A DNA stretch of 63,324 nt, counting the filler, from Octopus bimaculoides (taxonomy: Eukaryota), in assembly GCF_001194135.2 (NCBI RefSeq). It is 5 parts of 5 records of this genome, joined end to end, with 100 filler letters (N's around TTAATTAATTAA, not from the genome) between each part and the next. Parts side by side here need not be neighbours in the genome. Positions count along the whole stretch, not along the records: positions 1 to 15,360 come from NC_069001.1; 4 more parts are not named here. One strand, written 5' to 3'. The translations under genes and the position numbers were made by a program. How positions within the stretch are numbered: position 1 is the first letter of the stretch; each line of letters begins with the position of its first letter. Of the stretch, positions 9,595 through 13,365 are shown piece after piece. The notes beneath the pieces are model-generated. The model searched no databases. It saw nothing but the letters and a program-made list of their open reading frames with translations, and was not told where the DNA came from.

Positions 9595-9655
9595 ATGAAA
9601 GGATTCTGCTTTTTGATAGCAGTGTGTCTTCTAGCTATCGTGGAAGGTGTTCAAA
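9595..9655 (+). CDS. Secreted Cys-rich peptide, exon 1 (signal peptide MKGFCFLIAVCLLAIVEG-VQ)
   Basis: actATG start; hydrophobic core ending V-E-G; donor CAAA|gtacgt, phase 1. Confidence 0.85.
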
Positions 9656-9660
9656 GTACG

Positions 9661-9699
<39 letters not shown>

Positions 9700-9723
9700 C
9701 GGACTTTTGTAATTATCTTTCAG

Positions 9724-9796
9724 ATTGCCCTATCATATGTTTCGTTCATCCATGTCAAATTGCTCGCTGCCCAATGTTTCCATATGCCACTTGCGT
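9724..9796 (+). CDS. Secreted Cys-rich peptide, exon 2 (N)CPIICFVHPCQIARCPMFPYATC(V)
   Basis: Acceptor aattatctttcag|; donor GT|gtaagt; 68-nt intron 1; phases 1 to 2 compatible; 5 Cys. Confidence 0.88.
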
Positions 9797-10003
9797 GTAA
9801 GTAGAAACCACTTTAATATTTGCTTATGCATCTACTCGCCGACACCATAGAATGTGAAATATTACACGCAGATATCATAGATAAAATACTGAAATAGACT
9901 TGCAGTAGTCATGTCATAGAGATACCATAATATAGCACATCAATGACCAGGTAATACATGTGCGATGAAAATATTTGAAACCTTTATTTTACTACTACTA
10001 CTA

Positions 10004-10064
<61 letters not shown>

Positions 10065-10942
10065 NNNNNNNNNNNNNNNNNNNNNNNNNNNNNNNNNNNN
10101 NNNNNNNNNNNNNNNNNNNNNNNNNNNNNNNNNNNNNNNNNNNNNNNNNNNNNNNNNNNNNNNNNNNNNNNNNNNNNNNNNNNNNNNNNNNNNNNNNNNN
10201 NNNNNNNNNNNNNNNNNNNNNNNNNNNNNNNNNNNNNNNNNNNNNNNNNNNNNNNNNNNNNNNNNNNNNNNNNNNNNNNNNNNNNNNNNNNNNNNNNNNN
10301 NNNNNNNNNNNNNNNNNNNNNNNNNNNNNNNNNNNNNNNNNNNNNNNNNNNNNNNNNNNNNNNNNNNNNNNNNNNNNNNNNNNNNNNNNNNNNNNNNNNN
10401 NNNNNNNNNNNNNNNNNNNNNNNNNNNNNNNNNNNNNNNNNNNNNNNNNNNNNNNNNNNNNNNNNNNNNNNNNNNNNNNNNNNNNNNNNNNNNNNNNNNN
10501 NNNNNNNNNNNNNNNNNNNNNNNNNNNNNNNNNNNNNNNNNNNNNNNNNNNNNNNNNNNNNNNNNNNNNNNNNNNNNNNNNNNNNNNNNNNNNNNNNNNN
10601 NNNNNNNNNNNNNNNNNNNNNNNNNNNNNNNNNNNNNNNNNNNNNNNNNNNNNNNNNNNNNNNNNNNNNNNNNNNNNNNNNNNNNNNNNNNNNNNNNNNN
10701 NNNNNNNNNNNNNNNNNNNNNNNNNNNNNNNNNNNNNNNNNNNNNNNNNNNNNNNNNNNNNNNNNNNNNNNNNNNNNNNNNNNNNNNNNNNNNNNNNNNN
10801 NNNNNNNNNNNNNNNNNNNNNNNNNNNNNNNNNNNNNNNNNNNNNNNNNNNNNNNNNNNNNNNNNNNNNNNNNNNNNTTTCATCGGGGAAAGGGTACTAT
10901 GTACACTAAGATATTTATTAATTTACAGTATTGATAAGGAGA

Positions 10943-11167
10943 TTAGGGCAGTAAGCTGGCAGAAACGTTAGCACGTCGGGCGAAATGCTTAGTGGTATTT
11001 CGTCTGCTTGCTACGTTCTGAGTTCAAATTCCGCCGAGGTTGACTTTGCTTTTCCTCCTTTCGAGGTCGATTAAATAAGTACCAGTTACGTACTGGGGTC
11101 GATATAATCGACTTAATCCGTTTGTCTGTCCTTGTTTGTCCCCTCTGTGTGTAGCCCCTTGAAATGT
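10943..11167 (+). mobile_element. SINE family A insertion with 15-bp target-site duplication
   Basis: gtattgataaggaga at 10928-10942 and 11168-11182 flanks a near-consensus copy. Confidence 0.92.
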
Positions 11168-11269
11168 GTATTGATAAGGAGAGTGCGTTTGGGAGGTTTT
11201 AACCGTCTATTTCCTGGCAGTCGAGGGATCTCGGGAGGTAGGTCTGGTAGAGTCTATACCGAAGAACAC

Positions 11270-12250
11270 AATTTTGTGGAGTCATGACGTCGACGTTATG
11301 CCCTGCGATTTGTTGTATGACATGCGCTCGCCATTCTTCCATGGTCATACCGGCTTCTTCTGCAGCTGCCTGGCCGCAAACCCTTTGCTACATTCAGCTC
11401 CAGCAAGGCCCCACTTGACAGCCGCCTTAAAGATACAATGCACCATTTCCGTACAATTAAGAAACGGCGAGCAGGGTGGTAGGAGTTTGGGACAGACGCA
11501 TTGGTCGGCGTCAGCTGGGAGCTCGGCACAAACGTGTGGCCGCCCGTTATCGTTATTCAAGTACACGGATTCATCCGTTGGGAACATGTCAGCACATGCT
11601 CCTCGAAAGAGCTCACCAAGTACTCCTCGAAAGAGTTTCGTGTCATGATATCATCCGTAATGGAGTGGTGAACCAGGCCAGTTTCTCCTGACACCGTGAA
11701 AGTGACGTTGAAGTTTTTCGGACGCTGACAATTGACAACTCGGACGACAGGAACGCTTCGAGGGGCTCGTCCAAAAGACCGCTTAGCCCAAATGTTGTAC
11801 CTACATTCATCAACGAATAGGCCGACAACTCCCTCTTCTATGAAGCAATGCGCGTACTCATAACGTTTACCCAGCATTCTTGGGACATTTCTTGCTTCTA
11901 GGACGTCTTCGACCAACTTCATTGTTATCAACATTCCACATAGGGCCCATGGGATTGCGAAAACGGAAACAGGCGGCTTTCCGAACAATGCTGCCTCTAA
12001 GTTCCTCATCATCTGTTAAATATTTGCGAGCGGGTTGACTTCAATAATCAACTGAAGCTTGGCTCGCATTTCTTCATCAACCTTAATGTTGTGGGCACCT
12101 CTGCACAACCTGTAACACCTTCCAGCCCGTAGTTAGATCGTTACTATGGATTGTGCAGTACTCCTTTTAATGCCAAGTGTGTCTACCAGTTGCAGGTTAC
12201 AGGTTTGATGCCTCTCGATGTGGGGCATATACGTCCGATATACGCATGTA
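11270..12250 (-). mobile_element. Frameshifted Tc1/IS630-like DDE transposase pseudogene
   Basis: HTH-like DTLGIKRSTAQSIV; first Asp in LFVDECRYNIWAKRSFGRAP; second Asp and Glu in NDNGRPH...LLPPCSPFLNCTEM (33 residues between D and E in this copy); multiple stops and frameshifts. Confidence 0.88.
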
Positions 12251-12519
12251 CTTTACGCATGGTTCAATGATTATAAGTTGGTGTAAGAGAAAGGAATATA
12301 AAATGCAACTGATACCGACTGGTTATGAATATTGCAATGAAAATGATTTTCGTGGACAGAAGAATCACTTAATTTATCTCTTCCTTGTAGCTATAACAAA
12401 ATAATAAAATTTACATGACAAAATATTTAAATTTATTATTGTTAACATGCAATTCTTAGAATGTGAATAAAAACACATGTAAAACTAGTGCTAAATTGAA
12501 TAAACTTATTCCGAACTCG

Positions 12520-12970
12520 AATACTCACGTACAAATTTGAATGATCGAAAAGACACTTCCCCGCATTCCGATTAATTTAAATGCTCTCGAGGGGCATTGT
12601 AATTTGCAAGTGCCAAATTCTGTGACCGAAGTGCGAAATTGCATGATCGAAAAACCAATTTGAATGACTAACTCCGTGGTGGTAATTTTTTTCGCGACTT
12701 TGAGCGACCCTATCAAATTGGATGACAAGCGTACGAAAATGACTCCGAAAATCTATAATAATAATATTAATAATGTTAGTGCGCTCGGCCGACGGTGCTA
12801 CACGCTTTGCAGCTCCACGACCCTCGTGGTCAAAATCTTCAACAATGCGTTTAACAGAATTACGGAACTGAAGTTGATAAAACCATTGTATTGTACCTCT
12901 GCGCCTGCACATCAGTCGTAAAGATTTTCTAATCACCTCTTCTTGGTTACAAACTATCTCTCCCCATACT
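12520..12970 (-). mobile_element. Second Tc1-like relic (N-terminal HTH fragment plus subterminal repeats)
   Basis: QLQFRNSVKRIVEDFDHEGR resembles the Tc1 HTH segment; repeated tgatcgaaaa motifs; no catalytic domain seen. Confidence 0.4.
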
Positions 12971-13253
12971 CGAGAATTCTCTATCATTGTTTCCTTGCTA
13001 GACCTTATCGATTCTAATCTCATAGCCCTGTACATGGTTAACCGCTGTCGATTGTTGATAATTGCCTCGCATATTCCACACAGATTACACACCCCACATG
13101 TGATATACGACATACAACATGTGTATCATATTCCACACTTAACTTATAGAGAACAACAACTCCACATTACTAAAAGCTATTTATCATTTATAGTTTGTGT
13201 TGCTCATTCATGAGAAGATATTGTGCTATTGATTGTCGTCTCTTTCATTTCAG

Positions 13254-13365
13254 GCAAAGATGTCCTTGCCGTGCTGAATTTTATATTTATGGGCGTGATG
13301 TGACGAGTTTGTGCAATTACGGTCCTTTTTGGAAAAATTATTATGAACGTGTTAATGGTTTGTAA
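13254..13365 (+). CDS. Secreted Cys-rich peptide, exon 3 (V)QRCPCRAEFYIYGRDVTSLCNYGPFWKNYYERVNGL*
   Basis: Acceptor gtctctttcatttcag|G completes GT+G=Val from exon 2; total CDS 246 nt = 81 aa + stop; 8 Cys in the mature part. Confidence 0.82.

Follow-up and report, generated by a model that had tools for sequence, protein, structure and literature searches.

The DNA analysed here, called the window throughout, is a stretch of 63,324 nucleotides (nt, filler included) from Octopus bimaculoides (RefSeq assembly GCF_001194135.2). It consists of five parts joined end to end, the first of which, positions 1–15360, comes from NC_069001.1. On the plus strand of this first part lie three short coding exons that specify a leader and one cysteine-rich module of a small, probably secreted protein. 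These are the first three exons of a gene that is already catalogued, as the predicted "uncharacterized protein LOC106869915" of 128 amino acids (aa), here called P0001 (XP_014771336.1; UniProt A0A0L8HLM3). An earlier note on this DNA had read the same exons as a complete, hidden gene for an 81-aa secreted peptide with eight cysteines. The features of the gene within the window are listed below, C1 to C8 being the successive cysteines of the module.

9490–9497, plus strand: candidate TATA box TATAAATA, ~105 nt 5' of the ATG, with a putative promoter role.
9595–9655, plus strand: coding exon 1 MKGFCFLIAVCLLAIVEGVQ, a signal-peptide-like leader; 61 nt, ending in phase 1, equal to P0001 residues 1–20.
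9656–9723, plus strand: intron 1, gtacgt...tttcag, 68 nt, with an (AT)n run.
9724–9796, plus strand: coding exon 2, 73 nt, phase 1 to phase 2; first half of cysteine module 1 (C1–C5: NCPIICFVHPCQIARCPMFPYATC).
9797–13253, plus strand: intron 2, gtaagt...tttcag, holding the gap at 10065–10877, (TAC)25, a repeat resembling a short interspersed nuclear element (SINE) and decayed minus-strand open reading frames (ORFs).
13254–13357, plus strand: coding exon 3 in the form of the public model, 104 nt, phase 2 to phase 1; second half of module 1 (C6–C8, QRCPCRAEFYIYGRDVTSLC) and the aromatic stretch NYGPFWKNYYERVN.
13358–13365, plus strand: GT TTG TAA, either the intron 3 donor gtttgt (128-aa model) or, unspliced, the ending ...NGL and stop (81-aa model).
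13582–13587, plus strand: first AATAAA 3' of the read-through stop, 217 nt past it; possible poly(A) signal for a short transcript.

The exon borders were read directly from the sequence. Exon 1 starts with an ATG that has an A at -3 and closes on the donor AAA/gtacgt; exon 2 lies between the acceptor ctttcag/ and the donor CGT/gtaagt; exon 3 follows the acceptor catttcag/, and reading through its end leads to the stop TAA at 13363–13365. When recomputed, the spliced three-exon coding sequence runs in one open frame over 246 nt, its introns lying in phases 1 and 2 with GT-AG borders throughout, and it translates into 81 aa with a hydrophobic leader followed by eight cysteines in the mature part. 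The exons, splice sites, phases and product of the earlier note were reproduced exactly, and the leader and the eight cysteines that it described are present. The shortness of the single exons explains why the gene is also absent, as that note had stated, from the mechanical ORF list of the window, in which ORFs that cross stretches of N are artefacts. The leader MKGFCFLIAVCLLAIVEG is hydrophobic, has small residues at -3/-1 and is modelled by AlphaFold as a helix at residues 4–16, all of which is consistent with secretion.

With the 81-aa peptide as query, a single protein was retrieved, P0001 from O. bimaculoides, which is 99% identical to it. The module that spans exons 2 and 3 scores 30.8 bits (E 1.7e-9 in a small search) against a hidden Markov model (HMM) derived only from repeats of the nematomorph Gordionus. 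Identity to the deposited protein and the score of the module together lie far beyond chance. Exon 1 is homologous to exon 1 of an Octopus vulgaris paralogue described below, and exon 2 is paralogous to exon 4 of the public model. The exons in the window almost certainly belong to a real gene. That gene cannot be called hidden, since it already stands in RefSeq and UniProt as an uncharacterized protein, and as a gene it adds nothing to public annotation. What the three-exon reading does illustrate is that tiny multi-exon genes can be recovered from raw sequence alone, here with the downstream splice missed. No relevant literature was found on LOC106869915, its protein accessions, the cysteine module that it encodes or octopus salivary cysteine-rich proteins.

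The three-exon reading and the LOC106869915 model share the same locus, the same DNA and the same exon borders up to 13357. They part at 13358, where the public model uses the donor gtttgt and splices to exons 4 and 5, whereas the three-exon reading runs on to GL and a stop. Residues 1–79 of P0001 are identical to the 81-aa peptide, through ...YYERVN, and thereafter P0001 reads AKKKCIIYNCFMDPCRGKTCPKFPNAECRSNYCNGCNFDFFVADVKVNC. Given the public donor at 13358, the ending G, L, stop of the 81-aa reading is read-through of that donor. The window was searched for sequence encoding P0001 residues 80–128, for exons 4 and 5 and for further paralogous exons, and contains none of them. Window positions 1–15360 correspond, at 100% identity and with identical gaps, to L001 407–15766 of CM046621.1 (GCA_001194135.2); in the same coordinates exon 4 is L001 20625–20709 and exon 5 is L001 22894–22957, both past a 4761-N gap that starts where the window piece ends. 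A single model with GT-AG introns throughout (exons of 61, 73, 104, 85 and 64 nt; phases 1, 2, 1, 2) yields P0001 exactly. In this model exons 4 and 5 add a second, canonical module (..NYCNGC..), whose cysteine spacing departs from the usual one only in a short C1–C2. The 81-aa peptide proposed earlier holds up for its first 79 residues and as a possible short product, but not as the sole reading, the deposited model being 128 aa long with a second module outside the window.

Intron 2 contains an assembly gap, and the continuity of the gene across it was therefore considered. The gap (10065–10877, 813 N) lies wholly within the intron and is the same in the only public assembly. Because it is intronic, the frame across it is irrelevant, and the question becomes whether exons 2 and 3 share one gene. 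An overlap between the two gap flanks was looked for and none was found, the left flank being (TAC)25 and the right flank unique sequence followed by the SINE-like repeat. Module 1 is nevertheless complete across the exon 2/3 junction, its match to the Gordionus HMM covering positions 9–47. In an ungapped assembly, the O. vulgaris paralogue (L002) has its module interrupted at this very codon position and in this phase, by an intron 2 of ~2.9 kb, and module 2 of the O. bimaculoides gene itself (exons 4 and 5) shows the same split as module 1. The complete module and the two matching splits are indirect arguments for placing exons 2 and 3 in one gene, with no coding part missing between them. 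Physical continuity of the two exons is unproven by sequence, and it is a caveat on the gene model.

The two modules of the public model carry signs of duplication. Exons 2 and 3, like exons 4 and 5, run from phase 1 to phase 1 and are split at an identical point, after Cys5 plus one codon position, and modules 1 and 2 can be aligned with each other. The intron ends 5' of exons 2 and 4, and those 5' of exons 3 and 5, are also alike, with a score that none of 500 shuffles reached, although this null is weak because all acceptors are pyrimidine-rich. The gene probably arose when a two-exon module unit, in phase 1 at both ends, was duplicated in tandem.

The earlier note had pointed to a likeness to an unnamed cysteine module that recurs in invertebrate secreted proteins, usually with the core NYCGGC. 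This likeness was borne out. At E<=1e-3, a HMMER search of 1.84 billion cluster representatives gave 275 relatives, of which 66 passed E<=1e-10 and 8 passed E<=1e-30; many of the relatives match in several stretches, up to 15, and whole-protein E-values go down to 2e-98. The module consensus is CPxGxxxVxCxxxPCxxxxCPxxPxAxCxxNYCGGCxAxFxxxxxxVxC. Across 95 diverse modules the eight cysteines are invariant and P12, P22 and A24 nearly so, with C-x8-C-x4-C-x4-C-x7-C-x4-C-x2-C-x12-C as the usual spacing. Named members come from Gordionus, from the molluscs Solemya, Dreissena, Candidula, Lymnaea, Biomphalaria and Bulinus, from the rotifers Rotaria and Adineta and from the nemertean Tubulanus; further members come from the echinoderms Apostichopus and Strongylocentrotus, the hemichordates Ptychodera and Saccoglossus, Branchiostoma and Styela. 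Names attached to some of them, such as papilin-like (Apostichopus), kielin/chordin-like (Gordionus, Styela) and zonadhesin-like (Branchiostoma), are machine labels taken from neighbouring domains.

Pfam contains no real match for the 81-aa peptide, for P0001, for module 2 alone or for the 95 modules; BSD (E 0.23) and IBR or zinc-finger noise remained below the cut-offs, and none of the Kunitz, Kazal, WAP, TIL, antistasin and pacifastin families reached its gathering score in the 81-aa peptide, P0001 or the 95 modules. In larger proteins the module does stand beside Kunitz, WAP, TIL, Kazal, thyroglobulin-1 and lustrin cysteine domains, and the Apostichopus "papilin" carries seven Kunitz domains. 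An eight-cysteine module that is found in hundreds of cluster representatives, repeated up to 15 times in tandem and habitually fused to Kunitz, WAP, TIL or Kazal domains, and that has no Pfam family or structure, merits a family definition. One match, P0054 (MBC8479818.1, 1663 aa), is from a metagenome-assembled genome labelled as an FCB group bacterium and also carries Kazal, right-handed beta-helix and dockerin domains; the module there could reflect horizontal transfer or contamination.

Against this family, module 1 of the octopus gene has all eight cysteines, at spacings of 3, 4, 4, 7, 3, 1 and 14, deviating spacings being found in a minority of the family. Outside the cysteines, the conserved motifs are a P that directly precedes C3, the string CPxxPxAxC, an aromatic residue at the fourth position past C7 and a V-x-C or V-T-x-x-C end, and module 1 carries them as HPC, CPMFPYATC, CRAEF and DVTSLC. 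The core itself differs, reading QRCPC in module 1 and NYCNGC in module 2, the latter scoring 51.8 bits against the Gordionus HMM. In the best 150 proteins, 300 of 427 modules have the canonical C3-to-C7 spacing (4, 4, 7, 4, 2), and a minority have C-x-C in place of C-G-G-C. Because such C-x-C variants recur, the NYCGGC core is typical of the family, not obligatory. The combination of C5-x3-C6 with C6-x-C7, in contrast, occurs among these 427 modules in two octopus proteins only. The contraction to QRCPC that the earlier note had pointed out, as C-x3-C-x-C, is also found in the O. vulgaris paralogue and is a real, shared trait of the octopus clade.

Compared with NYCGGC modules elsewhere, octopus module 1 has in common the eight cysteines, PC, CPxxPxAxC, A-x-[FWY], V-x-C, a signal peptide and tandem use. 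It differs in that C1–C2 spans 3 residues and not 8, C5–C6–C7 are spaced 3/1 and not 4/2, and an aromatic stretch of 14–16 residues is added; in the octopus genes each module is split by a phase-2 intron. There is no sign of a new kind of system: this is a real family, as yet without a name or dedicated study, of which octopuses have a contracted form with an added aromatic stretch.

The closest relative of the O. bimaculoides gene is O. vulgaris CAI9738668.1 (P0093, 85 aa; isoform CAI9738667.1, 87 aa). Its gene (L002, OX597834.1) has exons of 76, 82 and 100 nt and ends in ...LPFKYMYYRGK and a stop that is overlapped by AATAAA. Like the O. bimaculoides gene it has the leader MKG..C..I..CLLA, three exons, the same phases, C-x3-C-x-C and an aromatic tail (LPFKYMYY against GPFWKNYY), and it ends about where the 81-aa reading ends. 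It is unlike that gene in that identity is only ~50%, an extra HKRWPEDD follows the leader, the end is RGK and no second module is present within 10 kb downstream. Between the two genes synonymous divergence (dS) is ~1.6 and the ratio of nonsynonymous to synonymous divergence (dN/dS) is ~0.26; by this measure the octopus module is shown to be under purifying selection. CAI9738668.1 was considered as an orthologue and rejected, since its non-coding flanks align only over repeats and dS is ~1.6, as expected of an old paralogue.

The earlier note had also advised looking for paralogue clusters. At the O. vulgaris locus there are two small paralogous genes arranged head-to-head, ~2.5 kb apart, one on the minus strand of L002 1–7444 (84 aa) and one on the plus strand of L002 10001–16864 (85/87 aa). 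This pair is a small lineage-specific cluster of single-module genes with MKG... leaders.

Several explanations of the locus have to be weighed. The region is rich in repeats and gapped, and the exons might be a chance array of splice-like sites or a dead, unexpressed gene copy. This is extremely improbable: the frame is intact, all eight cysteines of the module and the PC and CPxxPxAxC motifs are retained, every splice site is canonical GT-AG, and dN/dS against the O. vulgaris paralogue is low. The 3' end of the gene is a closer matter. The five-exon, 128-aa form is the most likely main product, with a chance that we put at about even. In its favour, RefSeq and UniProt carry the identical 128-aa model, the exon 3 donor and the exon 4 acceptor are compatible in phase, and AATAAA is present after the exon 5 stop. 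Many members of the NYCGGC family are secreted proteins of this size with two modules, and the same architecture (a signal peptide and two modules in ~130 aa, ending at or near the last cysteine) recurs in other phyla, as in Tubulanus P0019 and P0028, in P0037 and in P0076. Other observations weigh against the 128-aa form. A collection of 5.8 billion proteins contains no RNA-derived protein with either C-terminus, and in the contig index P0001 is carried by the genome contig only. Intron 3 contains the 4761-N gap, exons 4 and 5 lie on separate small sequence islands, and the donor at 13358 (ATG/gtttgt) is the weakest of the four, with a stop two codons later. In the closest relative, CAI9738668.1, the protein stops directly behind the corresponding aromatic tail, and the 18-residue aromatic linker that the 128-aa form implies is atypical for the family. 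The RefSeq and UniProt annotations may not be independent of each other. Finally, neither Pfam nor PDB provides a functional match, and the domain company of the module is guilt by association.

The public 128-aa model spans a 4.8-kb gap and may fuse two tandem genes, which makes it a concrete annotation question. It is possible, though less likely than the five-exon form, that the 81-aa three-exon gene is complete, that exons 4 and 5 are parts of another, tandemly placed paralogue with its signal exon inside the 4761-N gap, and that the 128-aa model is a fusion artefact. The O. vulgaris gene fits this well, being a three-exon, single-module gene in an ungapped assembly with the same phases, the ending ...YYRGK and stop after the same tail, and AATAAA at the stop. 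With the 84-aa paralogue head-to-head beside it, the octopus clade appears as one of small single-module genes, and single-module secreted proteins of 75–80 aa occur in gastropods and other animals. However, CAI9738668.1 is an old paralogue; its 3' end is therefore suggestive and not decisive, and need not predict that of the O. bimaculoides gene. Within O. bimaculoides, the window offers the stop just past the weak donor and the AATAAA downstream of it. Intron 1 is just 68 nt long, and its 3' end resembles the 97 nt visible 5' of exon 4 (L001 20528–20624, between the 4761-N gap and the exon, consisting of (CA)31 and then the sequence like the 3' end of intron 1), so that the gap is just where a copy of exon 1 would be expected. 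The shared database model, the phase compatibility of exons 3 and 4 and the frequency of two-module relatives, given above for the 128-aa form, count against this explanation. A compromise in which both products are made seems rather doubtful. Splicing from the weak 13358 donor would yield the 128-aa protein with its two modules; transcripts that ran on past the donor and were polyadenylated would encode the 81-aa protein, with one module and a free aromatic tail. The weakness of the donor and the stop immediately after it would suit such a choice, and annotation of the O. vulgaris paralogue lists isoforms with two different 3' ends, P0093 and P0151, but no strong poly(A) signal lies near the stop, the first AATAAA being the one at 13582.

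In the favoured reading, exon 1 encodes a probably cleavable signal peptide, and exons 2 and 3 together encode one presumably extracellular module of ~45 aa with eight cysteines, contracted (C1-x3-C2; C5-x3-C6-x-C7) and followed by the aromatic stretch. In the 128-aa form, exon 3 would then be spliced at 13357/GT to L001 20625–20709 and 22894–22957, repeating the two-exon unit and adding the canonical module. The product would be a 128-aa precursor, ~110 aa when mature, with 16 cysteines and probably eight disulfides, and once secreted it would be predicted to fold into two small, disulfide-locked beta-hairpin domains. Our best guess at its action is that of an extracellular tight-binding module of the protease-inhibitor type.

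As is general for such modules, the protein would be secreted co-translationally, with four disulfides per module and a rigid binding surface. Structure was assessed with AlphaFold models, in which module 2 of P0001 has a predicted local distance difference test score (pLDDT) of 92–97. Module 1 of P0001 was poorly modelled because the alignment rows fell on module 2. The O. vulgaris paralogue P0093 served as a proxy for the 81-aa product; in its model the contracted module has a pLDDT of 79–95 and is folded as a small beta-hairpin domain, while confidence in the tail is low. A Foldseek comparison with PDB gave no match for the P0001 model and only meaningless CMP-kinase and EGF matches (E>5) for the P0093 model, although Foldseek is weak on proteins this small. 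A PDB sequence search with P0001 likewise gave no matches. Matches from a profile search of PDB at E>1 (the ribosomal S27a zinc ribbon and an antifreeze protein) were rejected as cysteine-pattern noise.

Kunitz, WAP, TIL, Kazal, thyroglobulin-1 and lustrin domains are characteristic components of multi-headed protease inhibitors and of proteins in the extracellular matrix. Because the module is interleaved with such inhibitor and matrix domains, an extracellular, protease-inhibitor-like binding role may tentatively be suggested; this domain company is circumstantial. Among the roles that the earlier note had put forward (defence, venom-gland, digestive or protease-inhibitor peptide), it speaks for the protease-inhibitor one only.

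NvCI-type inhibitors act on M14A carboxypeptidases in the picomolar range, with a short free tail that enters the active site. NvCI itself (PDB 4A94), the metallocarboxypeptidase inhibitor of the gastropod Nerita versicolor, is, like the octopus protein, small and from a mollusc; its core is a beta-hairpin, and it has the motif PC..(.)CP..P.A.C ... C...W ... V.C. The module could be a distant relative of NvCI, and the octopus protein could inhibit carboxypeptidases through its C-terminal tail; we consider this improbable, and treat the link as a lead from sequence comparison without claiming membership. If true, it would be the first biochemical handle on the NYCGGC module family. In a module profile search of 177,635 PDB sequences the NvCI chain 4a94_C ranked third (E 3.3), and hhalign gave a probability of 68% with a pairwise E of 4.9e-5. 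The E-value is not database-significant, however, cysteine-rich composition inflates such scores, and Foldseek matched neither model to PDB. NvCI and the module have in common PC-x4/5-CPxxPxAxC, an aromatic residue at the fourth position past the penultimate cysteine and a V-x-C end, and the octopus C5-x3-C6 has the spacing of NvCI Cys23-x3-Cys27. Yet NvCI has six cysteines and not eight, and a C6–C7 loop of 10 residues against 1–2.

In the NvCI structure, Trp42 is buried between two disulfides and the pairs are Cys9-23, 15-51 and 27-38 (PMC5511257), and the inhibitory C-terminal tail is two residues long (PMC6780499). The octopus tails differ from this: the 128-aa form ends at its last cysteine, and the 81-aa form has a tail of 16 residues against 2 in NvCI. 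Short tails after the last cysteine are found in gastropods, where P0203 (Lymnaea), P0205 (Biomphalaria) and P0207 (Bulinus) are proteins of 76–80 aa with a signal peptide, one module and the tails CAAVAEA, CAAIA and CSAA. These single-module members speak for the NvCI link, and their architecture is the closest to NvCI. A broader proposal joins several of these points: that the NYCGGC module is an undescribed, structurally unsolved family of invertebrate Bilateria, across molluscs, rotifers, nemerteans, nematomorphs, echinoderms, hemichordates, amphioxus and tunicates, that NvCI is its only characterised relative, that a clade of small genes with the contraction and aromatic tail evolved specifically in the octopus lineage and encodes secreted peptidase inhibitors or ligands, and that the 81-aa form with its free tail is genuine. 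As a whole, this is not likely to hold.

Other features of the window are mainly repeats. A SINE-like repeat of ~200 nt, tRNA-like in its 5' part, is present twice in tandem at 5650–6051 and as a single, ~90% identical copy at 10961–11160 in intron 2; it is also present at the O. vulgaris locus (L002 8059–8572). ARAGORN found no tRNA genes, and the repeat has no intact tRNA. On the minus strand of intron 2, between 11296 and 13113, lie several broken ORFs of 77–178 aa with the motifs FVDECRYN and LLPPCSPFLN; these tentatively suggest a decayed DDE (Tc1/IS630-like) transposase, but Pfam gave no match at E<=10. Microsatellites, including (AC)n, (TATG)52, (ATGT)88, (GT)53 and (TAC)25, are located at 780–844, 2420–2495, 4963–5170, 6773–7124, 7311–7417, 9990–10064, 13910–13992 and 15001–15083, and produce long spurious ORFs. 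At least three of the four internal gaps begin or end at a microsatellite (844/845, 6772/6773 and 10064/10065), and microsatellites probably explain the assembly breaks.

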